Position numbers and translations under genes: made by a program. This document shows positions 3,501 to 43,346 of a stretch of DNA of 52,258 nt, piece by piece (position 1 is the stretch's first letter; the number at the start of each line of letters is the position of its first letter). The notes under the pieces are model-generated. The model made no database searches. It was not told where the DNA came from and was given only the letters and a program-made list of their open reading frames with translations. The DNA is taken from the NCBI GenBank assembly GCA_000708835.1, contig DF237563.1, forward strand, positions 1 to 52,258, written 5' to 3'. The stretch is from Klebsormidium nitens. Taxonomy: Eukaryota; Plantae; Klebsormidiophyceae.

Positions 3501-6500
3501 TTTTGAAACCATTGACTTGGTGCCCCCACCTTGTTCTCCATGGAGCAGAGCGCGAAGGTCCAGCCGCGCTGTCCCACCAGGTTGCAGAGCAGCGCGTCGA
3601 GCCACTCCGACTTGCCGCTGTTGGGCACGCCGGTCACCACCGACAGCTCCCCCGGGACGATGCGGTACAGCTCGTCCAGGCCGGACCAACCTGCACGAGA
3701 GCACGGACTTTTCGACCAGACGCCCGGAGGAATCTCTCGAGCATTCCTCGAGCACGAGATAAGCAAAGCTACGAGAAATGGATGTGGTTCGGGCTTTGTG
3801 CGGCACTGATGCCAACATTCGGTAACCGGAGCGAACCGTTAAAATGAACAACAGACACTGAGAAGGTGGACGACACCCTTCCAGAAGAGAACTTATGAAA
3901 GTTCTTCAAATCTTTTCCAAGCGAAGCTTGTGGGTCCATTAGACCTGACCGCTAGCTCCAAAGTTGCAAGACGACACTAACGGCCAGGCTAAACTCACGA
4001 CATGCAAGTTTTTTTGAATCCTACCAAGAAAAACAGTGGGTGAAATCCCTCACCGGTGGACACGCCACGCTCGTCCCCCAGCTGCAGGTGATAGTAGTCG
4101 TCAATCTCCTCGAAGAACGACTCAAACTTGAACAGCCCCCGGATCGGGAACGCCTCCGCGCCCTCCACCGCCTCGCGCACGCCGGCCTTGCCCATGCGCA
4201 TCAGCGCCTCGTTCGCGTCCTTCACCGGCTGCCCCGCTGCCGTCATCGGCCACTTGACCCGCCAGCACTTCTCGCGCCCGAGCCGCCGCGCGAGCTCTTC
4301 CGCGAGCGCTTGCCCCGGCTCGTCGGAGTCGGTGGCCAGCACGAACTTGGAGGCCTTGTCAAGGTACTCGCGGCAGTTCCACAGGTACTCGTACTTGCGG
4401 TCCGCTTCGGGAGCCGGGAGGGGGGTCCCGGGGTCGGATGCTTTCGCGGGGGCGCCGTCTGGGGGGCCAAAGAGCACGGTTGAGAAGATGGGGAGATTGG
4501 AAACAGTAGATACGTTTTCGAAGATTCAACTGATGCACGTTGGTGAGCGAGATTTGACAACGATGGTGCATTAAGCAGTGGAAAGGTAACGAACTGTCAA
4601 CATCGACAAACGGCATCGTAAGGGGAATCGCGCAATCCTAGAGTAGCCGAATCGTCTGAATGCACGCTCGCTTATTCCAGGAAATATTCCGGCTACGTTG
4701 GCCGGCAATGGAACAGAAGGATGCAAGTAAACAGTTCCTGCGATGAAGTATGTAGCAGCGGGCCACATCTGCTGCCAAACAAAGAAAGCAGCAGACGCAG
4801 TAGACACGTCTGCCAATAGATATGCGCACCTTCAGTTTAGCTAACTGCCTACGGACATCGGCAGTCACTTCAGGACAGTGCGAAAATTCTTTCAGAGACG
4901 ATCACCCAATTCTTGACAGCCCATCGCTTCTAATTCGACGAAAATTCTGTTAGTCGCCTCCTTTACATTCGGCTTTTTAAAACCCTTCTCAAAGACTGCT
5001 CCTTACTGCCATGCAACCTCGATCGACGATCAGTTTCACCAGGAAGCCAACGCCGATTTCTTCTATCCTGCATAACCAACGGAACTAGCGGACTGATCGC
5101 ATTTCAAATTCGCAGAGCACCGACTCGTGATTCCGAACGTATTAGGTTGATTGAGCGGATTCTCCAGGCCTAAACCTACGCGCACCTGGCACGCTGACGC
5201 AGTTGAGGTAGCCGGCCTCCTCCATGGCCAGCTTGTCCATCTCGCCCTCCACGATGATCACCGTCTTGCTGTCAGCAATGTCGTCCAGGCCGTAAAACAC
5301 CTTCTCTGCGCCCTTGACCTGCAAGGACGAACGGTTCTTCTTAAAACCCCTAGAATTACTATCTGCGGGTGTGAAATGGAGGCTCTTATGGTGCATTTAG
5401 CCACGACACTACTCGTTATACCTTGCCAGACCTACAGGAAAACAACGGGGAAATTCCTGCAAAATGTAACTATCCTTCTCAAAGGGAAAACCTTCCGGTA
5501 AAGTCTACTATTTTCTCCCAGGCATAAACCTTTGGCTGGCACCGAAAGGCACCGAACACAAGAGGATGCCATTAAGGAATTCGGCGAAAGTTCAGAAAAC
5601 AAAGTATGTAGCAGCGGGCCACACCTGCTGCCAAAACAGAAAGCAGCAGCCGCAGTAGACACCTCTGCCGGTAGGTATGCGCACCTTCAGTTTAGCTGAC
5701 TGCCTACGAACATTGGCAGTAACTTCAGGACAGTGCAGATTAAATTGTACCGATCGATCTCCCAACTCTTAAAAACACCATGATATCCAGTCCTGAGGAA
5801 ACTTCTTTTGGTCGCCTCCTTGCACACCATAGATTTTTCAGGAACCTCTCAAATACTGCTCAACTGACGCCAAGCAACCTCAATCAACAAACGCTTTCGT
5901 CAAGAAGAACGCCTTTCGTCCCAACTTTCGACAAGATCTTCGAAGTGTAAATACGGTTCTTCCTTCCCCATCGACAAGAAGAAGTGCGACAAGAAGAAGT
6001 GGACATGTACTGCCTACGCTTACGATCCGTCAAAACAGCTCAGTCAAATTTGTGCCCAGTGCCCTCCCTCACCTGCCAGAAGGCCTTCTCCGGCCCGCGA
6101 TACTTGACGTTTACGAGCTCGCCCCTGCGCACGTATGGAAACGCGAGCGCGTCCGCCTCCTTTTGCAGCTGCGGACTATACGTCCGTTCCTTCTTCACCC
6201 CGTTCCTTATAAACGTCCCCTCGCTAATCTTCCGGTTCTTGAAGAACGCAAGCTGTTCCTCGTCGAGCTCCGAAAAGTCTTCGGGCCGCGGGAGCTTTGT
6301 CGCGGGGAAGCGCTTTTTTTGTAGAGCCGTTTCGCGGGACTTGGTGCTGGGGCTGTAGGAACCCCCGAACTGAGAGGTCGAGCGTGCGGGGTAGCGGGAC
6401 TTGACGGAAGAGGCCCAACCGCACTTGCCGCGGAAGCAGTGCCACACCGCGTTGTCGCCGCTCTTGATGGTCACGCCCAGAGACAGCTCCTTGGAGTCGC

Positions 6501-11800: not shown

Positions 11801-14800
11801 GAGGAGATTGCTGCGGAGAAGATTGCGGAGTTGAAGAGTAACCAGGTAAGGTGTCTTCCCGTCTGAAGAGATACGGCTTAAGAGCATTTCGTCCTAGGAT
11901 GGCTACAGATCTGGAGAAGGTCCAGCATGCCCTTTACGTACGCCAAAAGCAGGGATAAATTGAGCTGCAAAATTTCTAGGCAAGGAGTACGTGTTTCTAT
12001 CCTGGCGTATGACGTCATCCACATTCCAAGGTTTTAATGGTTTCACCTTGTATCACAGTGCAAGTCTTACCGTTTACCCACTCTATGAAATGGCATTTTG
12101 TCGATCCCTGGTTTATGGTGGGTAGTGCTAGCAAGAACTCTAGACCTCCAAAACATTCCGCTTCTCCTTTTTCGTCTGACAGCACTGGTTGGAGTTGGAG
12201 CGGAAGACGCAGCTGGGCCCCGTGGCTGGTTTCGGCAAGCAGGCGGGGGACCTCCTGAAAGCAGTCCTGACGGGGTACGATACGGAGGCGGCCTTCTTCG
12301 ATGAGAGCGTGCGGGCGGAGAAGCGGAAGGGCCTTTTCACCAGCGCAGTAGGGGTGAGTCTGTCTGGCAAAGATTTCACTTCCGACACCTGTTTGCTTGG
12401 CACGAGGGTTGTTCTAAATGGATGGGAGTCGCAAGGGCACCTTTCTCAGGGTATTTGTCTTCCGGACTTGCGAATCATTTTGGAAAACTTGCGCCGGTTT
12501 TACCAAACCGATTGGAAGAGCTTTTGAGAAGATGGTCGAGTAAGGTCCGGGTTTTTACTTTCTTCACCAACAGGAACGTGGGGAACCAAGACGCTGTGAT
12601 GCGAAAAGCTAGTGCTTACCAAGTGAGAAGCCGCAGGGGAGCCGGCGGTCGAGACATCATTTGATCTAGTACTGTCGGAACGTCAATTGACCTGTCCCCG
12701 TCCGTTGTGTCCAGGTCATTCACGAGTCGTTCACGACCCTGTTGGGTCACCGGCGCGCAGAGGCGCTCGACAAGTTCAAGGCTGAGCTGGCGGCCTCCGG
12801 CGTCCCCTCTACCTCCTCCGATGGACCGCCCAGCAAGGACGCCGACGTGCCTGGCTTTGCGGAGGCGCGCAGGCGATGCACCGAGAATGCGCTTAAGGCC
12901 TTCGACAAGGCTGCCGCGGGTGAGGGTTTTGTTTCATTTCATGGTCGTAATAGCGTGCTGGCGACAAGTACTTGCCGGAACAGCTTGGCCAACTGACGTA
13001 CTCACATGATTCTAGAAACGTCCATTCTCTTTCGTCAAGTCCGAAAATGACTACATCGGCCCGAGTGCTCTTCTGGAGCCGCGTGTGTCTTCTAGTCTCA
13101 TTTAGGGTTCTCTTGCTTTCTTAGGAATCTAGCTTGTGCCTCGCAGATGCTCTCGTGAGTGGTGCGGGGTGGGACTACCTGCGCACCCGGCAAAAGCTGC
13201 AGCGCGACATCGACGCCCACGCGACCGCTGTGCGCACCGAGCGACTGGCCGCCATCCAAACGAAGGCCAAGGTGGGGGCCATTGTTTTTATGGATACTCG
13301 CTTTTCGAAATTGTTCAAAAGGCTAGAGCTGGGACTCCGACCAGCTCGTGTTTTCTCAACTGCTGCTAAATCCGTACGATTTTCTGGAGAAGCTTGTGCT
13401 GCGATCACCCCCATCAACTATTCTCAGTTTGTCCAACCGGCTCAGGTGTTCTGATCTCATTTTGTACATCCGGCACTTGGAAGGACCTCAACTTTTGTGG
13501 AACTCCAGCCCTTATAACCTTTTTTTCTCGTTCTCTCAGGACACGTTGCAAGGCAAGCTTGCGGAGCCCGCCAGTTCGCTCCTGGACGCTGCGTCCTCCG
13601 AGACCTGGCCCGGCCTGCGTGAGCTGCTGGCGCGCGAGACGGCGCACGCGAAGCAGGAGCTGGCGGCCGCGGTGGCGGGCTTCGAAGTAGAGGCGGAAGA
13701 AAGCGGCGCGCTGGAGGGGGCGCTGGAGGACGCGGGCAGGGAGGCGGTGGAGAAGCGCGCCAAGGAGGAGTCGACGCAGGCGCTGATCAGGATGAAGGAG
13801 AGGTGGGGGTATTTGAATTTCTCCGTTTTGACAGGCTGTTGGGTGGGCTAAGGCTCAGATGCAGCTGTAATACTGGTCTCTTCACGGGCTCATCTTCCGG
13901 TGTGGCAATCAGCAAGTCGATTCGTCGATTCTGTTGTGCCTTCAAACTCTCTGTTGCATTTGAGATGATCCTTGAAGCTGAGAGATTGTAAGAGCGCGCT
14001 GTGCAGACTCGTGACGGATCCTTTCTTTGCAGGTTCAACACTTTGTTTGGCCGCGACTCCGAGTCGATGCCGCGCACGTGGGCAGGCAAGGAGGACATCC
14101 GGGCCATCACGCGCGAGGCGCGCATCGGCGCGCTGCGGCTGCTCAGTGTTCTGGCCGCCGTCCGATTGGACGACATCGACGGCCCTGATACCGTGGCCGA
14201 GGCGCTGGAGACTCTGCTGGAGGGGCAGGAGGGCAGCATGGCACTGCACCCGCACTCAGAGGGAGGAAGCGCGGCGGGGGCCAAGGAGGCGCCGTCCAGG
14301 AATGCGCTGGCGGGGGCTACGTGGGAGAACGTAAGTCTGGAGAATCGATCGAGCGGGCTTCTCAGGGTCGCAATGTGATTGTCTCGAGGACGTGCGACCG
14401 GTGGTCCATAATCCAGTGCATTTCGTGCCGGAGATAGCCTCGAGAATAGAACGCCATGCCCAGAGCACGTCAAAGCCAGGCGTTTGGACCCAGTATTTAC
14501 TGGCCGCTTGGGCGAACCCTGACTCTGCAGCCGACTCCGTACATTAGAAGTTTGCCGTCAACTGCGTTTCCCCTTGTCTTTTCCGTGCAAGGCCACGTGC
14601 TGCATATATCTCTGAGTTTCATTTTGGCGCCCTGGCACGTTTGCATTGCGTGACCCTCCTAAGGGACTCTTGCCGTGAAAGGTAGCAGCAACAGCCTCAC
14701 TCAATTCCAAACCCATATTTTCAAGCTCTGCCCTCTTCCCCCATTTAATCCCACCCGTTCCAAGGCCTCGACATTACCCTTCGAAAAAGGTTCTGATCTT

Positions 14801-21574: not shown

Positions 21575-24500
21575 TCAGTGCTTATTTTCCTCCGGCACCG
21601 CAGACTCTTCCTCAGGTTCACCCCTTGCAATGCGCTCAGCCTCCGCGGCATCAAAGGCTGCCTTTTCGGCTTTCATTTGTTGCACCTAGTAGACAAACAC
21701 GGATTGAGAAATCAGGATGGATGGGGATGACGGCCCTGTCTTCAATCGTACTGGTGGTCTTTTCAGACAAAATAATCCACCAATGTTCAGCGAAGTTACA
21801 ACTTAGACCATCACCACCTGAGATTCATTACGTCAGCTCACATCGAGAGTGTGTGGTTCCTGCGCGCAGACTCATGACTTCATCCCATATCGGTGTCAAA
21901 TGGACAGTGAATGGCTGACAACCAAGAGGAATGCCAACCCAGATTTCGATGCTCACCGGCCCTTCTTCCCCTTTGTCCGTTTCCCCTTCTTTCGTTTCCA
22001 CCACAAATGGCAGCAAATCATCCAGCTCTCCCTTCTGTGCCTTTTTAGCCACTAAGTATCCTCCGACCACAACCAGATTTATGATGGCCAGATAGATAGA
22101 GGCAATCCCCCTGCCGGCATCGCCATCTTTCTGCGGTGTTGAGTCTATCTGCGGCAGCGCAAGCAAACAAAGACAAATGAGAGGGGCAGTAAGGACTTAC
22201 AACGCCAGTGGGGTCTTGAAGGAGATCCCAGTTGACTTCCGGTTTCCCAAGATTCCATACCCAGAAGCCAACTGCAGTAGCAATGGCCGACAGGCCCATG
22301 CCCAGAGGGAATAATGTCTCCTCAAACTCCAGCTCTCTCTGCAAAACAATGGGCCCAATTGCTGAGCTTTTAACTTAGCGATGGCCTTTTAGCAGCCTGC
22401 TAAGGAGATGGTTTGCACATCGCAGACCAGAGAGATACTCCATGAGGTCATTAAAAGCACCAATACCCATCAGCATTGAGCAGTTTTGCCCAGGCAGGTC
22501 TCTTCTTGTCAGACCAGAAGAACTAGTGACGGAGCTGCACTCAGTATATACATGTGAGAAACAGCAAAGAGGACGGAAACTCACAAACGGCCGCGTGATC
22601 TCCTTCTCGGGCGCTGGGCCAATATCCCAAGGTCCAAAGAAGGGCTTGATTTTGTCGGCGGGGGCGTCGGCAGGGGGCACCCAGGGTGTGCCATAGTTCT
22701 CCTTGGGGAAGAGGTAGGGCAGATCAGGCATCTTGGAGGAGTCCATCCGCTGGTAGATGGGGTCCGACGGGTTCACATCGTCCGGATTGCCGGAGTACTT
22801 CTCAGCGCTTGCTGTAACAACAGGGTGGGGCAACTCAATGACGCAGGCGCAAGCTGGCTCAAAACATGACTTCCTGAAAAGGTTCCTGTCTTTTGATCGA
22901 ACCTCAGTACAGACGACACATTTGCCAGAGGAAGGAAAGACGATGCGCAATTCCAGGGTAGAAGTCAGGCTCGGGCAATGACACAGATTGCCAACATAAA
23001 AATGGGAAAACTTTGCTGAAACAGTTCTTCTAGTCGCGGCACGAAGTCTGCAAAGCAGTTTCTTCACAAGCAAAGCACACAGCTGCTGCCTTCCATCGGA
23101 TTCAGGCGGGTGCACTCACTTGGCCTTCGGATGTTCGCCTCCCTGATCCGTTCTGCAGAGCCAGGCCCGTACTTTGGCAGCTCTGGCGCGGCAGCCTCCA
23201 CCTTGCTCGCGCTGCCACCCGCTTCTGCTGCAGAAGGGGATGCCAACACCTCCTCTACTTTGCTGCGCACGCTCTCTGCTGCCGCCTCCACCTTGGTGGT
23301 GACAGCCTCCGCTGCCTTCTCTACCTGCGCCGGCACGCTCTCTGGTGCTGCTGCTGCTGCTTTAGGCGCCTCCGCAATTTTCTCCACCTTGGGAGCCACT
23401 TCTTCAACCTTTGATTCCACCTTGGGAGCCACTTCTTGGATCTTTGATTCCACCTTGGGAGCCACTTCTTCGACCTTTGATTCCACCTTGGGAGCCACTT
23501 CTTCGACCTTTGATTCCACCTTGGGAGCCACTTCTTCGATCTTTNNNNNNNNNNNNNNNNNNNNNNNNNNNNNNNNNNNNNNNNNNNNNNNNNNNNNNNN
23601 NNNNNNNNNNNNNNNNNNNNNNNNNNNNNNNNNNNNNNNNNNNNNNNNNNNNNNNNNNNNNNNNNNNNNNNNNNNNNNNNNNNNNNNNNNNNNNNNNNNN
23701 NNNNNNNNNNNNNNNNNNNNNNNNNNNNNNNNNNNNNNNNNNNNNNNNNNNNNNNNNNNNNNNNNNNNNNNNNNNNNNNNNNNNNNNNNNNNNNNNNNNN
23801 NNNNNNNNNNNNNNNNNNNNNNNNNNNNNNNNNNNNNNNNNNNNNNNNNNNNNNNNNNNNNNNNNNNNNNNNNNNNNNNNNNNNNNNNNNNNNNNNNNNN
23901 NNNNNNNNNNNNNNNNNNNNNNNNNNNNNNNNNNNNNNNNNNNNNNNNNNNNNNNNNNNNNNNNNNNNNNNNNNNNNNNNNNNNNNNNNNNNNNNNNNNN
24001 NNNNNNNNNNNNNNNNNNNNNNNNNNNNNNNNNNNNNNNNNNNNNNNNNNNNNNNNNNNNNNNNNNNNNNNNNNNNNNNNNNNNNNNNNNNNNNNNNNNN
24101 NNNNNNNNNNNNNNNNNNNNNNNNNNNNNNNNNNNNNNNNNNNNNNNNNNNNNNNNNNNNNNNNNNNNNNNNNNNNNNNNNNNNNNNNNNNNNNNNNNNN
24201 NNNNNNNNNNNNNNNNNNNNNNNNNNNNNNNNNNNNNNNNNNNNNNNNNNNNNNNNNNNNNNNNNNNNNNNNNNNNNNNNNNNNNNNNNNNNNNNNNNNN
24301 NNNNNNNNNNNNNNNNNNNNNNNNNNNNNNNNNNNNNNNNNNNNNNNNNNNNNNNNNNNNNNNNNNNNNNNNNNNNNNNNNNNNNNNNNNNNNNNNNNNN
24401 NNNNNNNNNNNNNNNNNNNNNNNNNNCTTTGATTCCACCTTGGGAGCCACTTCTTCGACCTTTGATTCCACCTTGGGAGCCACTTCTTCGATCTTTGATT

Positions 24501-25198
24501 CCACCTTGGGAGCCGCTTCCTCAATTTGCGTCTTCACTGCAGTGCCTGCATCCTCAGCAGACTGCACTACCTGGGCCCCTGCCCCTTCTGCTGCTTCCTT
24601 GACTTCTCCCGCCGCTGCCTCCAGTTGGGCCTTCTCCCGAGCGGCCCGCTCCTGTATGGCGTGTACCAGCTCCCGCCTCTGGCGCTCAGACTCTGCATTG
24701 GCCACAAGGAAGGCGTTGAGTTACCATGAGCGATTGCAATTGCTGGCTTTTCATCAGCGATTGGTGTTACGGAAATGCAGAAGTTGAGGCAGTCACAAAA
24801 TTTTGTCATAGGGGTCCTCAATTTAGAGGGCCTAAAAGGGAATCACCACCAATGAGGCTCCAAAAATAGCAAGCGCAGAGTGTATACATGAATATCAAAG
24901 GAAGCATATCCACATTCATGTTTCTCTGCTGACCTGTGATCCCCTCCTCCTCGACAAAGGCCAGCGCCTTGTCCACCCCGAGCACAGAGAACGGAAGTGC
25001 TATTCCTACAGACAGCAGCGACCTTCTGGAAGTAGCAACACCACCTGGTTTGACCATCTGCGCTCTCTCCTGAGCTGCATTGCACCTGATGCTGACACGA
25101 CGTTGAGTCGTCGATTGCTTCTGTTGGCATGGCGCCTGGGGACTCAGCAATGCACCTCTGCTTGCGCTGGTAGCGCACCTCGAAGCAGCTGTCGCCAT
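21575..25198 (-). CDS. Uncharacterised chloroplast thylakoid protein: transit peptide + twin-arginine signal, 11-aa tandem-repeat domain, two C-terminal hydrophobic helices
   Basis: Exons 25198-24934, 24692-23120 (contains N gap), 22811-22585, 22338-22201, 22148-21957, 21685-21575. GT-AG; phases fit (unverifiable across the gap). N-terminus is S/A/R-rich, followed by SRRSLLSVGIALPFSVLGVDKALA (RR, hydrophobic core, A-X-A). Hydrophobic segments LFPLGMGLSAIATAVGFWVWNL and GIASIYLAIINLVVVGGYLVA. Confidence 0.75.
23385..24525 (-). repeat. 33-bp coding tandem repeat (unit [IV]EEVAPKVESK), at least 8 visible units
   Basis: Plus-strand unit ccttgggagccacttcttcgacctttgattcca is head-to-tail on both sides of the gap: 5 units on one side, 3 on the other. 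Confidence 0.95.
23545..24425. other. Assembly gap (881 N)
   Basis: Run of N flanked on both sides by the 33-bp repeat, so likely a collapsed repeat. Confidence 1.
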
Positions 25199-34860: not shown

Positions 34861-37800
34861 ATGCCGATAGCGTGCGCGAGGTCCCCCGTCAACGTAGGGG
34901 TCGCGCGCGTGGCCGCGCTCCCTGATCGGAAACTAGCGGCCGAGGCTGTCACAGCTGTTGAGGGCTGCTCATCCAACATTGAAGCGCTCACGGCTCCGAT
35001 CCGCGCTTCCGCAGCGCACACGGCCGCAATCTGCGGTGCCGCAGTGCGCGCAGCCTCTCTTTCCCGCGCTGGTCCCTCGGCGACGCCTTCTCCTTCCGAC
35101 GCTGCTCATAGTGATACACCTTGTCGCCTCTCCAGCGTCCAGACGACACCAGCCGCGGACGGAGAGACGGCAGGACAAACGCGCGACTGTCGGGAGGTGC
35201 TCCGTTTGCGCGGTGGTGGGCCGAAGCGGAAGTCCAACTACTCCGAGGAAGAGTGGGAAACAGACAGCGATTCCGAAGAGTCGGACGAGATTTGGAAAGA
35301 TCTCGAGGAGCTGAACGGAGAATCTGACGACGAAGAGAGGGAGGACGAAGCAGAGGGGGGTTCGATGAATGAAGCGGAGGCTGAAACAGGGCCCCCTGAA
35401 GAAACTTCCGATGACGGGGGAGAAAAGTCGTCCGAAGACGCGTCCAAAAGTAACGAGGGTTCGGAAGAGAACATGGAGGTGGAGTTGCCCAGACCCATGG
35501 CCCGGGGTTCAAACCAGGGGGAAGGAAACAATGCGGATGCAGAAGAAGACCCGTCCCTTTCAGGCGGTGCTGCAGCGGCGCCTCTGGTCGCCAGGATTGG
35601 CACGATCCAGTCTCTTCCTGCGACCCCGAATGAACGGGCTACCCAGGACGCCCTCCAAGTCCCAACTGAACCAAGCCGGCGGCAGCCCGCCCGCAAGCGC
35701 GTCATACGGACAATGGATCTTAGTGACGACGAGATGAGCGAAGGTGCTGGGAAGGACGAGTCCGAGGAGAGGGTGAGTATCGTGCCTGACCGACTCTAGA
35801 GCGTCCATTACGGTATTGATTGCTGCAATGAATCGTATAGGACATGTATGGTTGCAAAGTCTACTTAACAGTTCACGGCTGTATGCGTCCAGTGCTAGTT
35901 CCGAGGAAAAAGAGTGGTCTCCTCAAGCCCGGGCCGCGCTCGCACGCAAGTCGTTTCTAGCTTGGGGGCCAGCACGAGAGACCTGTGCTCGTTGTCGCCT
36001 CTCACCAAGGAAGCGGTTCAGGGGGATCCCCTCGGGCTGTGCTCGTTCTTAATGTTGCTTCTCAGCCGAGAACAGCTGAGAGGGATCCCCTCTGGCACTT
36101 TTTATTTGCTTGTCTCCCGAAATTGAGAGGATGATCCTAGGGCTCATTCTGGGGAAGTGTAGCAAGTCAGAAGAGATGATATTGGTGAGGTGGAGGACTT
36201 GAAATCTGCTTTCCTCCTCCTTGTGCAGCCCCCAAATCGAAGGCAGCGGATGGAAGACAAGGGCGAGCTTGGACGGCGCTTTGGATCCGGAAGGGGCTAC
36301 CCACAGAGCGCGCAGGACGAAGGCGGCCGCCCAAGCCAGCAAACGGGTCTTGAAGACTGCTGGAAGAAGCTCACGGCCAATGAAACTGCCGCCAGAGGCG
36401 GTAACGAGCAAGAAGTCGGCCGCCTGCCGAGGGAAGTGGGCCGCGACAGTCTAGTGCAGCGGACAACAGGGCGCGAAGACGGCGCTCGCGCCGTGAGTAG
36501 CCTCACCAGCCGCGCGCGACATGAAGCTGATCGTGGAGGGCGCGCTCAAGGTCAAGTCGGCGGCCTTGAAGAGCGCCTGCACATGAACAACGGCCCACAG
36601 GTCTCGGCTCGAGTGGCCCGGGAACGGACTCAGGCACAGGGAGGCGCACAGGCGGCAACTGGGCCAGGTTGTTATATTCATTTATTGTAACAAGGAGGCT
36701 CCGAATCTCATTGCTAGTCCATTCTGGCAGGCAATAATGTTCCTTTTAAGCTGCAGCGGTTTTGAGAATTTTGGCTTCACGTGCCACTATTTCCAAGGGG
36801 ACCCGTTTTTATTTGCCAAACCAATTCAGACGACTACAGTATCTACGAGAATCGGTGTATCATACTATTCAGAGCTGGCTGTCAATGCCTCCAAAGAACC
36901 TCATTTGGATGTTTTCCGGTCCTGTTTGAATTCGTTGGCAGATCTATCTTCAGAACACTCTGAACGTGCGCATTGAAGAGAAGACCATGAAGCGTGACGT
37001 GAGGATTAGTCACCTCGAAAGTGCGGACTCGAAGATTGAATGGAATTCGAAAGATTGGAGCCACGGCCGCTTGTTTCCGATCGCAGTTCTTTTGTCCTTC
37101 TTGTATTCTCACCGCTTTCTCCTCCTCAACCGTTGTCAGCTTGTCATGCACCCTTTTAAGTTGAGAACCCAACACTACGGCGAAGTACAAATCTAGCTCT
37201 TCAACTTTCATTGACGGCCATGACGAGTAGAATTTAGTTTCCTGAACCAACTGTTTATCCCCGCAGGGACAAGCGTCAACGAAATTGACGAGATCGAGAC
37301 GGTCTGCAACCTTTTGAGAAGCACCAAGCTCGTCAAGAACGCCAGGCAGGTTCTGAGAGAGGGGGATAAGAAATCTTTCATGCAGTCGTTAGCCGTAGCG
37401 GCATTTGCGGTGGGGGATGCGCGCTTGTGCAACGAGGGCGTTAAGCTGGGGACAAAAAGTACCGACTGGCCGATGCACCAATGGTTTCATGCGGTGGCCA
37501 GGCGACTGGGATTTATTCCGGCGGCGTTGGTGTGTCACCTCAAATTCCACTTTAGCCGAACCGAGGACATACGAGGCCGCGCGCGTTTTTGGGAGTTGTG
37601 TTGCAGCTCGATAGGTGAGTAGCGCAATGTTTCTGCTTACCCTTTTTCAGCAATTGACTAGCTCTAGCAAATGTGATCACATCAACCAGCTTTCGTGATC
37701 CATTATGGATGAATCTTGACTTTAAGCAGAGAAACTCATTGACGAGGAAGACCGTCGAAACCCTTACCTGTGTAGCCAATACCTCTTGCCTTATTCAAAA

Positions 37801-40800
37801 GACAACGCTATTTGATTCCACTGTGCTTAATTTGGAATCCTTCTCTTTTCTGGAGCGGCTATTGCACACAGTACTTCTTCGTACTTAGTAGGCCTGCGCA
37901 AGGCAACTTCTGGTGATCTGGCCCCTAAACTTTGCATCTTATTTGCTGTACAGATTCGAAGGAGTTCGCCACCGACATCTGCAAGCTCTTCAACACTGAC
38001 ATCAACAGCAAGGCCCGATATTTTACCCTCCCCTCGCCAGCTGTCCTGGAACGCATCTTCCAAGAAGACCCCGGACTACTCTTCTCCTTCTGCCTTTCCG
38101 GTTTTCTCCAGGGGGAGGGTTGTCTTATGAAGTGTCGGCCGTCGATGATAGCAAAGTACCCGGCAATACTCTTCGTTTCAGGGAGCTTGAAAGCCATACT
38201 TGGCATCTGGTGTTCCATAGCGCGGTGCTTCGGAGTGGAGACGGGCTCATTCAGTATATGTGTTGCAAAAATTGAAGAAGATGACGTCTTCCCTGAGGAC
38301 GACGACGTTCATGTGTCGAAAAAGGAAGCAGAGCCGGACATCGACGAAACGGAGACGCAACCGGAGCGGAAAGGACGTGTGCGGTACTCCGAGCTATCGG
38401 ACAGAGAGGAGCGGCAGGGGGTGCGCTTGCTGCTGCAAGTGGCGCGCGCGAGATCGAAAGAGATCAAAGATGCCCTGAAACGGTGGGCCCAGGAAATTGG
38501 CGCGGAGGACGAGAACTCGGACGAGGAAGATTCCGAAGGAGGAGGGGTTGTTTGGAGCAAGGAGCTAGCCAGGGGTCTCGCATGCCGCGCGGCAAAACGG
38601 TTTGCATATGACCGGCCGCTGACCTATGACCTGGTTATGCGGGTTGTCATCGAGGAGTTGGAGAAAATCTATCTGCAAGATGCGGGCGACGGCCGGAAAG
38701 TGATGTATCGCTTGACTTACACCGCAAAGCACGACGTCCTCAAACTCGCCGTCATCCTGGTGATCGGAAGCGACTGGAAGACAGCCGTGACGACAAAACT
38801 GGAGGCGTTTGTGAAATGGGCGACCACTTTCAAGGAAATCGGTAAAGGTATGTATTCTCGTCCCATCTGAGTTGCTCATTTGTTTCTAAACATCTGGGAG
38901 CTTGTTTTTGACCATCTCATAATGGAATAATCTAATCAATTCAAGTTCCACAACCTGACTAATTTTGGAGACACTCAAAAAGCACCTGGGTCTTTTCACA
39001 ACTTCCCTCCTTAGAGCAGGGTCGTGTAGCGGCAACTTTGCTTTGTGCTTCTCGCGGTTTCTGGAGAGAGCTATCAGGCAAGAAAAACTAATTTGAATGA
39101 AACCGTTGTCATACAAGTGCCGCCGAACGGCCCGCGCATGCGCCAGCGTGGTGACAAGAATCGACGTACATGGTACTCTCGGACACAATCGTCTTCAAAT
39201 CTAAAATCTATCAGAGTGGATTCAGTTAGCGATTGTTTGCTCCGGTGCATCAAGCTGTTCACAAGATGCGAGCACATCCTGGCGGAATTACCTGCGCAGG
39301 ATCAACATCTCGATAATGCTCTAACGAAGAAAGATATGCTCAGTTTCTAGACAACCCGATTTACTTCACACTTTCAGTACAACAGAACTGTACGAACCCG
39401 CAGGTCATACAGTTCTGTTGTACTGAAGATTTCAGCGAATTTCAGGGTAGTCCAGCTAAACAATTGCTATGCGGATTGCCATCGCTAACTTCGTGACAGC
39501 GGACACCATTACACTTTTTTCTTTGCTGGCAGGCAACTTTCCAGGCGCACAGAAGGGGATCGAGTTTCGTGAAGGGATCCGACCCTTCGCCCAGAAGAGC
39601 AACGATATCAACCCGGGGGACCCACACTGCTGCAGCTCGCTTGAAGCTCAACAGTATCACCTGAAGAGGTGGAAGGAGAACAAGCTTACGTGGGATCAGT
39701 ATCGTACGGCGTCGTGGGTATCCTCAAAATCAAGTGCCAGCGGCAGGCTGAAGAAGGAGAACATCAACTCAACGGTGGAGACCGACGCTGGTGAGTTTCT
39801 TGAAATTTCGAGTGCCAAAACCTATCCGATCAGAGATCGACCGAACGTCTCATTGGTAAGCAGATCTAGAATCAACGTCAAGTCACATACAACAATCAGT
39901 TTGGAAGTGAACAATTTATCCCTGCCCTACGAGAGTCAGAAGAGCCTTACGAAATGGCGAAAGTTTGACAAACGACATTGGTAGACAACAATCCAAACCC
40001 ATCAGCCTTGACCATTTGCTAGACAATCGGTTTTGGCTTTCTTCTGGATCCCTGCCTCAAATTCTTTTTCTTTGCACCACCACCGACCGAGGCAGACACG
40101 TAGTTGACCCCTATTTGGGCCCGTCGAGAGAACCTTTCCTCCGTCACCCGGTTGACCGCTCGGGCGAGAACGGGAGAGAGGAGACATGCTCGCCCCCAGT
40201 CGAGAGACGGGGGGGAAAGTATTTAATACCGGGGAAGAGGCCTTCCCTTAGGAACAAGTCCCCACTCCTCTCAAGCGAGTGATTCCAAATGCAGATGCTC
40301 ATCAAATTCCCCATTTGTTGCCCGTTACTTTCTGGCAGTATGATGCTTAAGATTGTGAAGAAACCCGAATATTGTCTCTCAGGATTCACTGGCTTGCTTA
40401 TTCCCTTGTAGGGTCTTTGTTCGGTTCAACATTAGATACGCGCCAAGGTCGCCTGTCTTGCTTCAAAGCTGTGGAATCCCAAAGATTGTGGTAGTCTGAT
40501 TCCGGAAGTCTCCTAGACGTTCTTTGAAGACATTGAGTTGTAGGATAGGCTGAAAGGCTGCTTGAAGCCCTCCGAATAGTTCAATTTTCTCCAGAAGGTG
40601 CTGGTTGTTTGACTAATTATCCTTGTCCCAACACTTGGACACACGCATGAGAGGGCTTAGATGGCTTTGAAGTAGTCTTCAAGCAGAATGCAGTTTTTGG
40701 TTGCCAGGGGACGACAGGCAGAAACAATCTGCACTTTTGTTTTCATTTGCTAGTTGAGCATTCAAAAGCCGTCTTGCTGGACCGTGATATATATCTGAGT

Positions 40801-43346
40801 CTTTTTTTCGAAGATAAAAAACGCAGGAGGTTTTTCACTTGGGCGAGATGCATTGGGCGGAGTTCTGCCCCTGTGGACGAGGGGTGAGAAATGACGGGAT
40901 TTCCCCACTTGGCAAATCGGGAAAGAACAGCCTCCCCCGATTCCTTCTCGTACTCCCCCTTTTGGCAACAAGCCAATTCTTATTGATACTGTTTCGATGC
41001 TGTGCAGTTTACTGGGAGCAAAGATCAAATCTGTGGGATCCAGAGCTGAACAAGCGGATCCATCAGCACGAGAAGCGTTTTGAGGTGCCGAATGGGGCGA
41101 CATTCGATCCTGAGGTGCTAAGGAACAAGTTCCTGCAGCGTCCCCAGCAGCTCGGGCTCTTTCTGCGTGGCAGCGCGGAAATCTGTTCAGACCTGCCAGT
41201 GACTACGTCTCAGTCTAAAGATGGAGAATGCGCTTTCCTTGTGGAGGAGGCGTGGCTGAAGGACCTGACGGACTGGCTCTTCAAGCAGCCTCCCTGCGGG
41301 CCACCCCCCTCGCCAACGACATACGAAATCAAAACGACGTGGCCTCTTTTGTTGGGTACGGAACATTCGACGGCCATGGTTGTAACGAGCTATCAGCTCT
41401 TCGTTCTCGCAACACTTCTTCGCTTCGAGGATTATGACCCCCAGAAGCTGCCGCGAGTGCCGGTCAGCACAGGAGCAGGACGGAAGAGGGGGACGGTCGC
41501 CGACCTACGACCCGCGTCCATTAAAGAGGTCCGTTTGCGGACGGCGGGCGGCCTGCTGACAACGACACAAAGCAAACTCTGGGTGTCCACGAACTGGACG
41601 ATGGAGCAACTACGAGCCAAGACGAAGGAGTGGTGTTACAAGGGCTTGAAGGTGGACCAGACGGACTACTTCGGAACCCTTGATTGGAGGTAAGGGTCAC
41701 AGTGCTTACTAACGCAAAACGGTCATCTGGAGCTCCAGGGTTGCGGTCTTTACAACATAAAAGTCGATAAGTGATTGATGGATTACTTTCAAAAATGGAT
41801 AGCACAACGCGCGACACGCTTACTCAAATTTGGGGGAAATTGTCAGATGGCACAGTGTGATGCGTCCCCTTTTCTCTGCAAATCTCAACTCAAAGTTACA
41901 GCACTGGGTATAGTGGACACGCGCTCAACTAGGCAAATGAGAAACTGTTCAATCGATTTGCGATGAACTGGGCTCAAAATGCGGTTGCAATTGTTTTAGG
42001 AATCGATTACTGGTATCTAAAAGAAATAAATCACCAGCGTGATGTGCCCCATCACAATCACACCCCCAATACGTTACTTTGACCCTTGTCCTCCGCCGGC
42101 CCTGTTCCACCCAAATCGCCCTCACAGACATCCAGGCGCGCCTTTCTAAAACCTTTTACAGCATTGCCACTCGCGCCTAGCCTTTTACAAAAAGTAAAGG
42201 AAGAGAGAAAGAGAGGTTGTTTGCCAGGCCTGCTAGTCTGTTCTTCTGAACTTCCGGACCCATGTATGTTTGCTGTGAAGCAGTTTGTCCATCTACGCCT
42301 TTTACAGAACCGAGGTCACCCTTCTGGTCGACTGTGCCCCTGTTGGACAAGCGAGGAGCGTGGCGTTCAATTCGGGTCAGACTCTCGGTGTCTTCATCGA
42401 GAAGGGGCTTGAGTCGGCGCTGGAGAGGGCGGAGCGGCCGCACTGTCGTGACTGGACGCGTGTTGAATTGATTGTGGTCGGTGAGGAGGCCGCTCCACCG
42501 GGTGTACCAAAAGCCCTCCGAGCGGCGGTCGAAAAGTCTCGAATGGGAGCGGAACTTAGTGAAGGAGCGAGCGAAGGAGGAGACGGCGATCAGCGAGCGG
42601 GGGGTAAGCGGTGGGAGCCATACGCGGAGTTTAATCGCCGTTTTGTTGGCACATGGAAGCAGCAACTAGAGCGGGCGCGTCGATTGAATCTGTCCGAGAT
42701 GGACGTCCGGCCGGAGCAAGTCAACGCGCTTGAGGCGCGCATAAGGCAGAAGCTCGAAACGATCAGAGAGAGTCTCGGGGACGACGAGAAAGAGATTGAC
42801 ATCGAGATCAAAGCCTACGGACTCACGCTGATACGCACCGTGGAGATGACCCTGACCTGGGCAGACGTGAGCCCGCGGGCAAGGAACTGGGTGTACGACC
42901 AACACCTCCTGAATCACATCGAGATGGGGGGTTGGCTTTGCAACAAGTGCGATCGGGTTGTCCCGGGCGAGGATTCGGACGATGTACCGAGGAACATCCG
43001 GTGTTGTTGCACCGAAGGGGAACGACTGCCAAAGGGAAGAGGGCGCTCGCAGCCGCGCACCTCACCCGAGCCGGATCACAAATGCGGTTCACGGAAGATC
43101 AAATGGTCGACGGCAGCTTGTGGCGGCCGGAGCATTCTCGTTGTGCAGAAAACGTTAGTCGAACTGGGATGCGCCACGTGGGCGCTTGCAGGCCCGAAGA
43201 AGTTTCGCGGGACGCGTGTTCCGTACACGTGGCCTGGCCCGGAAGGGAATGGCGCCGAAGGATCGATTACAACGATCCAGATGGCGAAGCTGATGTGGCA
43301 GGTGCTCCTGAACGCAGGCTTTGACGAGTATGTTAGGTCGATGTAG
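34861..43346 (+). CDS. Large orphan multidomain protein (~1517 aa): LRLRGG motif, acidic tract, double LAGLIDADG (DOD-type) endonuclease-like domain, C-terminal Cys/His cluster
   Basis: Exons 34861-35772, 36229-36667, 37267-37614, 37954-38841 (alternative donor 38847), 39545-39790, 41008-41689, 42308-43346. All GT-AG, with matching phases 0,1,1,1,1,2 and no internal stop (4554 nt). The 5' end and possible extra small exons are uncertain. The domain call is by-eye. Confidence 0.65.

Follow-up and report, generated by a model that had tools for sequence, protein, structure and literature searches.

Can a nuclear gene of a streptophyte alga encode a LAGLIDADG homing-endonuclease fold that sits in no intein, and if so, is this fold part of a host protein, a working nuclease or a piece of a mobile element? 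The question is raised by a nuclear scaffold of 52,258 bp from Klebsormidium nitens, a charophyte green alga. We analysed it over its whole length (the window), in which the original prediction had marked positions 37267-38841 as an intron-split gene for an intein-type double LAGLIDADG fold. To our knowledge, few LAGLIDADG genes have been tamed by cellular genomes: HO and WHO in yeasts, OTP51 in plants and WhiA in bacteria. We find that the segment is not a gene in its own right. It comprises two exons, ending at 38847, of an annotated gene whose 1,844-aa product was identified by exact look-up as the K. nitens hypothetical protein GAQ90217.1 (KFL_006140070). Our comparisons suggest that these exons (37267-38847) probably encode a monomeric, double-motif module of LAGLIDADG_3 type that has diverged strongly and been domesticated as a nuclease or as a DNA-binding module.

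Homology to free-standing double-motif enzymes

The comparison that carries this assignment is one of profile against profile. As templates we took genuine LAGLIDADG genes from viral contigs, using two degenerate motif patterns; all six templates that were checked exceeded the threshold of Pfam LAGLIDADG_3. The template profile was an alignment of 71 free-standing double-motif enzymes. For the query profile, the exons were spliced for the window and for three related loci (L001, L002 and L003), aligned, and stripped of a 140-residue insertion. Hhalign matched the two profiles over 202 columns with a probability of 95.3% (P 2.2e-8, score 56.5), in a register that pairs each motif with its counterpart and also aligns the intervening helices and strands and both conserved lysines.

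The controls clearly separate this match from background. One hundred column shuffles scored 14.5 ± 2.9 with a maximum of 25, which leaves the real score about 14 standard deviations higher, and the reversed profile scored 19.2. When both motifs were masked with X, a score of 34.8 (P 8e-5) remained. The match also held with the insertion kept in the query (47.9), with the K. nitens sequence alone (42.0) and with a second template alignment made by an alignment tool (probability 91.2%). Two other conserved regions of the same protein scored 10-14 against the templates, and the insertion alone scored 12.1, which is no match; two genuine LAGLIDADG groups compared with each other, our positive control, reached 66. 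Among the parts of the module, domain 2 alone matched with a probability of 92% (P 5e-7), unedited exon 2 with 55.7% (P 1e-4), and the exon 1 piece with P 0.044, located at motif 1. Judged by these profile comparisons, the module is a real but very diverged double LAGLIDADG module, homologous to the true enzymes.

The kind of enzyme matters as well. The homology to double-motif enzymes that the original prediction had proposed is borne out by this match, whereas its label of intein-type is unsupported, because nine intein-embedded domains used as the template fit much less well (score 24.4 against 56.5, P 0.009, from a profile that is thin at nine sequences). A profile of single-motif phage enzymes matched domain 2 with P 0.004 and domain 1 not significantly. 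Comparison of the domain 1 profile with the domain 2 profile was likewise not significant, and HMMER searches of the spliced proteins with the true-enzyme profile returned only 2-8 bits.

Exon structure and relatives

Exon 2 was queried by exhaustive HMMER against 1.84 billion representative proteins (E <= 0.001), and seven matches were recovered: the K. nitens protein itself, four exon-sized relatives, a 57-aa fragment, and, matched only weakly (E 1.3e-5), a protein of 2,689 aa that is unrelated. The four relatives and the fragment come from two public assemblies, and their contigs gave the five related loci L001-L004 and L179. These fall into two paralogue lineages, with the window, L001 and L002 in lineage A and L003, L004 and L179 in lineage B; the lineages share 31-36% identity and are saturated at synonymous sites. 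Two metagenome scans gave no further relatives, and a whole-protein search restricted to the C-terminal region matched only the K. nitens protein itself.

Two of the lineage-B copies, at L004:9262-10966 and L179:6168-7779, come from one Joint Genome Institute (JGI) metagenome, share 88-92% DNA identity, and both look broken. In-frame stops occur in several exons of L004, whose motif 1 reads G-N-D-stop; L179 has a frame change in exon 2, which may be an assembly error, and its motif 1 reads E-D-G.

The exon structure proved to be shared among these loci. Exons 1 and 2 are 56% identical to L001 over 132 aa and 57% over 308 aa, respectively. A GCAG acceptor at 37263-37266 precedes exon 1 and has a counterpart at the aligned position in L001. 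The intron between the exons begins GTGAGT and ends ACAG, and its removal joins G to AT in an Asp codon; sequence conservation halts at its donor and restarts at its acceptor. In all five related loci an intron interrupts the corresponding codon in the same phase. It is bounded by GT donors and AG acceptors in the four loci that were read closely (L001-L004), and the exon split is seen in L179 too. The motifs and the intron are thus real and not a chance feature of one sequence, since both are conserved across related loci.

The same conservation corrects the boundaries of the gene. Exon 2 closes with a conserved E-[IV]-G-x-G directly before a phase-1 GT donor at 38848, and both the peptide and the donor are kept in the five loci checked (the window and L001-L004). 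A stand-alone gene of 410 aa is ruled out because this donor is conserved. The public model of GAQ90217.1 uses a donor at 37458|37459 spliced to 37954 and omits 52 residues (37459-37614). These residues are conserved in all relatives and correspond to helix 2 and strands 3-4 of LAGLIDADG domain 1. Cross-species conservation supports 37614|37615 as the donor, against the annotated one. The coordinates of the module and of the features around it are collected in Table 1.

Table 1. Features of the K. nitens locus, in window coordinates
Feature	Position	Strand	Remarks
Annotated gene KFL_006140070	33481..45289	+	Exons placed on the window by tblastn; span of about 12 kb
Exon 1: a pair of N-terminal helices, then helix 1 to strand 4 of LAGLIDADG domain 1	37267..37614	+	Open frame
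LAGLIDADG motif 1, VAAFAVGDA	37395..37421	+	Gly50 and Asp51 invariant in four homologues
Spliceosomal intron, GT...AG, phase 1, in domain 1 between strand 4 and helix 3	37615..37953	+	
Exon 2: helix 3 of domain 1, linker, LAGLIDADG domain 2 with insertion	37954..38847	+	
Invariant Lys of K..[FY]x[LIVM]PxPAV	38010..38012	+	K-to-K in hhalign with the near-invariant 'KT' Lys (template K114)
LAGLIDADG motif 2, LSGFLQGEG	38094..38120	+	Glu codon 38115-38117; aligned with RGFFDGDG of true enzymes
Insertion of 140 residues in the domain 2 hairpin formed by strands 3' and 4'	38271..38690	+	AlphaFold2 model
Invariant Lys of R-K-[LM]	38796..38798	+	Aligned with the invariant 'L-x-R-K' Lys of true enzymes (template K217)
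Next annotated exon downstream of the module	39532..39789	+	GAQ90217.1 residues 1044-1129; 51% identity to L001
Conserved C-terminal region 1	41004..41690	+	66% identity to L001; best conserved part; colinear in L001-L004 and L179
Conserved C-terminal region 2 with cysteine cluster	42303..43343	+	No Pfam match, no significant PDB match

Catalytic residues, and whether the module still cleaves

Both motifs and the peptides quoted with them in the original prediction are present, in the order it gave. Motif 1 reads LAVAAFAVGDA over 37389-37421, with its Asp encoded by GAT at 37416-37418, and aligns with motif 1 (LGFxxADG) of the true LAGLIDADG enzymes; in the relatives it has the canonical form F-L-[IV]-G-D-G, stronger than the FAVGDA of the window. 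Motif 2 has the consensus G-[FL]-x-Q-[GA]-E-G-C, and its G, Q, E, G and C do not vary among five homologues. In the spliced protein the motifs are 121 residues apart, and each ends in an acidic and then a small residue. Cleavage is known to involve the last acidic residue of each LAGLIDADG motif (PMC2758277). The prediction that both are retained holds beyond the window: all four homologues that were spliced and look intact (the window, L001, L002 and L003) share the motif 1 Asp, the motif 2 Glu and both lysines without exception. The retained catalytic set suggests that the module may still cleave DNA.

The alternative that has to be weighed most seriously is that the module is a catalytically silent scaffold, which would bind DNA as WhiA does or RNA as OTP51 and the intron maturases do. 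Most known captured LAGLIDADG domains gave up cleavage. OTP51 is without endonuclease residues (PMC2758277). Moreover, the K. nitens motif 1 ends in GDA rather than GDG, a 140-residue insertion occupies the predicted DNA-contacting hairpin, and the module is fused to large extra domains. Inactive relatives, however, usually lose the acidic residues and the lysines, which here have stayed invariant across lineages that are only 31-36% identical and saturated at synonymous sites; nor was a pentatricopeptide repeat (PPR) tract or a helix-turn-helix (HTH) domain found. We regard a silent scaffold as quite possible, though it is not the reading we would choose first.

At the other extreme, the module might belong to a nuclear meganuclease that is still active and cuts the genome of the alga itself at a specific site, as a programmed double-strand break. 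The streptophytes would then have an equivalent of their own, of independent origin, to HO or to a WHO-like nuclear homing element, derived from a free-standing, viral-type LAGLIDADG gene and not from an intein. We consider this more specific proposal rather unlikely.

Host gene or mobile element

The original prediction had left the choice between a domesticated protein and the nuclease of an undescribed large mobile element. The domesticated alternative fits best, and the mobile one less well. The paralogue count, proposed as a check, found the gene once in the window and once among the annotated K. nitens proteins, as for a single-copy gene. The exon-intron architecture is identical in all loci and the gene is colinear in both paralogue lineages. 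With dN/dS values (nonsynonymous over synonymous substitution rates) of 0.19-0.36, read at saturated synonymous sites, the module shows purifying selection. No terminal or direct repeats occur within 28-48 kb around the gene, and no intron, intein or duplicated target gene encloses the module. Taken together, the single copy, the shared architecture, the dN/dS values and the absence of repeats point to a domesticated host gene.

It is nevertheless worth asking whether the module could be the nuclease of a selfish element, either a WHO-like homing element of the nucleus or an undescribed transposon of large size. Its catalytic residues are kept, and two paralogue lineages occur in the same samples. 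The stops of L004 and the frame change of L179, both from one sample, recall the decay cycle of homing genes; WHO clusters likewise hold pseudogenes (PMC7282813). The decayed look of these two lineage-B copies in one metagenome does weigh against the host-gene reading. Set against it are the single copy in the K. nitens scaffold and annotated proteome, the multi-exon architecture with introns at identical positions in all loci, and the selection, repeat and location data given above. On this evidence a selfish element seems improbable.

Domain libraries and structure models

Not all of the evidence favours a domesticated LAGLIDADG module, and the points that weigh against it deserve to be set out together. 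Domain 1 alone matched the templates weakly, with a P of 0.003 that barely exceeds the best shuffle, and the boundaries of the insertion removed from the query were chosen by the analyst, guided by the hypothesis. The K. nitens motif 1 departs from the canonical GDG, as described above. The Pfam check that had been proposed (LAGLIDADG_3, LAGLIDADG_WhiA and Hom_end) came out negative: nothing rose above threshold on the window exons or on the whole 1,844-aa protein. PHROGs and NCBIfam gave no match for the module, and PDB sequence searches with four profiles gave insignificant matches only, none of them for domain 1. The models made with AlphaFold2, which was run on exon 1 and exon 2 as separate chains, are of low to medium confidence (predicted local distance difference test, pLDDT, of 62 for exon 2 and 72 for exon 1), and that of exon 1 is without the first hairpin. 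Foldseek searches of these separate models against the PDB (twice) and BFVD retrieved no LAGLIDADG structure.

Below threshold, the searches retain some trace of the family. Domain 2 of L002 and of L003 matched LAGLIDADG_3 at motif 2 with 13.5 and 12.7 bits (E 0.09 and 0.16; cut-off 22.5). When the motif 2 piece was compared with the PDB, two of the three insignificant matches were I-PanMI and I-AabMI, each at its own second motif. A further set of negatives agrees with the expectation that intein blocks and a PPR tract would be lacking: Hint, intein-splicing, Hom_end, PPR, LAGLIDADG_WhiA and HTH families had no match in the 1,844-aa protein (Pfam, with Hint and Hom_end at E <= 10).

The structure models can be read in the same graded way. 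The model of exon 2 (mean pLDDT 61.9, predicted template modelling score 0.62) runs helix, strand, helix, strand, four-helix insertion, strand, helix, helix, and this predicted order is what one would expect if the last hairpin of a LAGLIDADG domain had received an insertion. The model of exon 1 (mean pLDDT 71.6) has the motif helix and the second helix. As a check of the paired fold, the AlphaFold2 and Foldseek comparison gave no clean confirmation: the element order of exon 2 fits, but neither a LAGLIDADG match nor the exon 1 hairpin was found. Folding exon by exon is, however, not a fair test of a paired fold. The paired LAGLIDADG fold of the module follows, as a prediction, from its homology.

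These negatives are also the case for a chance resemblance, in which a lineage-specific orphan of a different fold happens to have two GDG/GEG-like helices: no curated model reaches threshold, Foldseek finds no LAGLIDADG match, and a family of four to six members yields thin profiles (effective number of sequences, Neff, about 2). We judge this very improbable, because the hhalign score stands about 14 standard deviations over the shuffles and stays significant with both motifs masked; the domains are also in the right order, their secondary-structure elements and both lysines are in register, and control regions of the same protein score only 10-14.

The insertion and the rest of the protein

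The insertion in domain 2 combines an acidic low-complexity stretch with a conserved helical sub-domain, best conserved at 38553-38672. In the AlphaFold2 model, strands 98-104 and 248-255 (exon-2 numbering) flank its four helices, which have pLDDT values of about 85-92. The two long helices from W200 to Y239, the stretch over which its invariant residues run, are conserved as well as the LAGLIDADG core (pLDDT about 86-92). The helical sub-domain is predicted to sit on the DNA-contacting hairpin.

The flanks of the module within the 1,844-aa protein are helical or of low complexity. The N-terminal residues of GAQ90217.1 (about 690) are charged and of low complexity, and their conservation is limited to lineage A. 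The C-terminal part (about 570 aa) has the same order and strand in both lineages and is conserved in every homologue. Its first conserved region contains an invariant G-x-G-x-K-x-G-T-x-A-D-x-R-P motif and belongs to no Pfam family; its sole PDB match is an insignificant one to ribosomal protein uL4 (E 1.5). The second region has a CxxC followed about 20 residues on by CxC or CxxC, with a Trp before the first Cys in the three lineage-A copies. This cysteine cluster looks like a small zinc ribbon, although no library recognises it.

The surrounding scaffold

The scaffold around the gene is that of a nuclear genome. Of two ORFs at 3998-4477 (minus strand) and 13348-13848 (plus strand), one has a Toprim domain, in keeping with the TWINKLE primase/helicase homologue kfl00614_0010 that is listed in PMC4166229, and the other has a Sey1 three-helix-bundle match; both are ordinary nuclear genes. 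The original description of a nuclear gene split by a spliceosomal intron agrees with these neighbours and with the intron ends reported above. An organellar origin of the module is ruled out because its introns are spliceosomal and its neighbours are ordinary nuclear genes.

Other features of the window are few. No tRNA or Rfam features were found in it. An 882-base run of N at 23545-24426, an assembly gap, lies within a minus-strand ORF (23064-24705) of KVESKVEEVAP-like tandem repeats, and an apparent low-GC dip at 22-26 kb is due to this run. Searches by gene identifiers and by sample accessions found no report on KFL_006140070 in the literature searched.

Comparison with known LAGLIDADG proteins

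The free-standing LAGLIDADG_3 enzymes (Pfam PF14528) of phages and large viruses are the best profile match to the module (95%) and its closest kin in sequence. Like the module, they have two domains, motifs about 100 residues apart, the acidic residues, and the 'K-T' and 'R-K' lysines. Unlike them, the module is nuclear, interrupted by a spliceosomal intron, enlarged by its insertion, embedded in an 1,844-aa protein, and below Pfam detection.

HO and WHO are the closest in biology. They are nuclear LAGLIDADG proteins that lie outside introns, do not undergo intein splicing and have C-terminal Cys-x-x-Cys domains, and HO is domesticated. These proteins keep an intein-like Hint region, and a zinc-finger domain containing 3-5 CxxC motifs comes immediately after it (PMC7282813). 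The K. nitens protein, in contrast, has no detectable Hint region and a single CxxC...CxC cluster about 600 residues downstream of the module, which fits the intein-type profile poorly (24.4). OTP51 resembles it as a streptophyte nuclear gene whose two LAGLIDADG motifs have been co-opted by the host. OTP51 differs in its PPR repeats and its transit peptide for the chloroplast, and it has lost its endonuclease residues (PMC8393795, PMC2758277), whereas the module has no PPR match and invariant acidic residues.

With the intein-embedded DOD endonucleases of the PI-SceI/VDE type the module shares the order of blocks, namely motif, short hairpin, helix ending in L-G, Lys-containing block and second motif, but Hint blocks do not flank it and the match to the nine such domains is weak (P 0.009). 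WhiA, finally, is a double LAGLIDADG scaffold that a host has reused. It is not known to retain catalytic residues and ends in a C-terminal HTH domain; the K. nitens protein, by comparison, has no LAGLIDADG_WhiA or HTH match.

Discussion

The protein described here is probably a domesticated nuclear LAGLIDADG protein with a new architecture. On this reading, a LAGLIDADG module has passed into the nuclear genome of a streptophyte alga, where it has gained spliceosomal introns and, in the last beta-hairpin of domain 2, a 140-residue insertion that is partly helical and partly acidic. It is now one part of a large, lineage-restricted protein.

What we infer of DNA binding, cleavage and biological role follows the pattern of the family. 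The two motif helices would pack against each other, and the two four-stranded sheets could build a saddle-shaped surface for reading a DNA site that is long and specific. The metal ions that cut both strands may be bound by the motif 1 Asp and the motif 2 Glu, aided by the two invariant lysines, while the flanking domains and the insertion might supply regulation or extra contacts.

Our analysis also holds a lesson for annotation. Curated domain libraries miss this family, and the public gene model loses 52 residues of domain 1.

In summary, the locus is a candidate for something rare in the plant lineage, a DNA-cutting enzyme that has been tamed. It would represent a separate case of domestication, in a streptophyte alga near the base of the land plants, with no intein or PPR partner, with spliceosomal introns and a large insertion, and with a catalytic set that is intact, unlike that of OTP51. 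If the module does cut DNA, it would be a natural nuclear meganuclease of the plant lineage and may provide enzyme engineers with a new scaffold.

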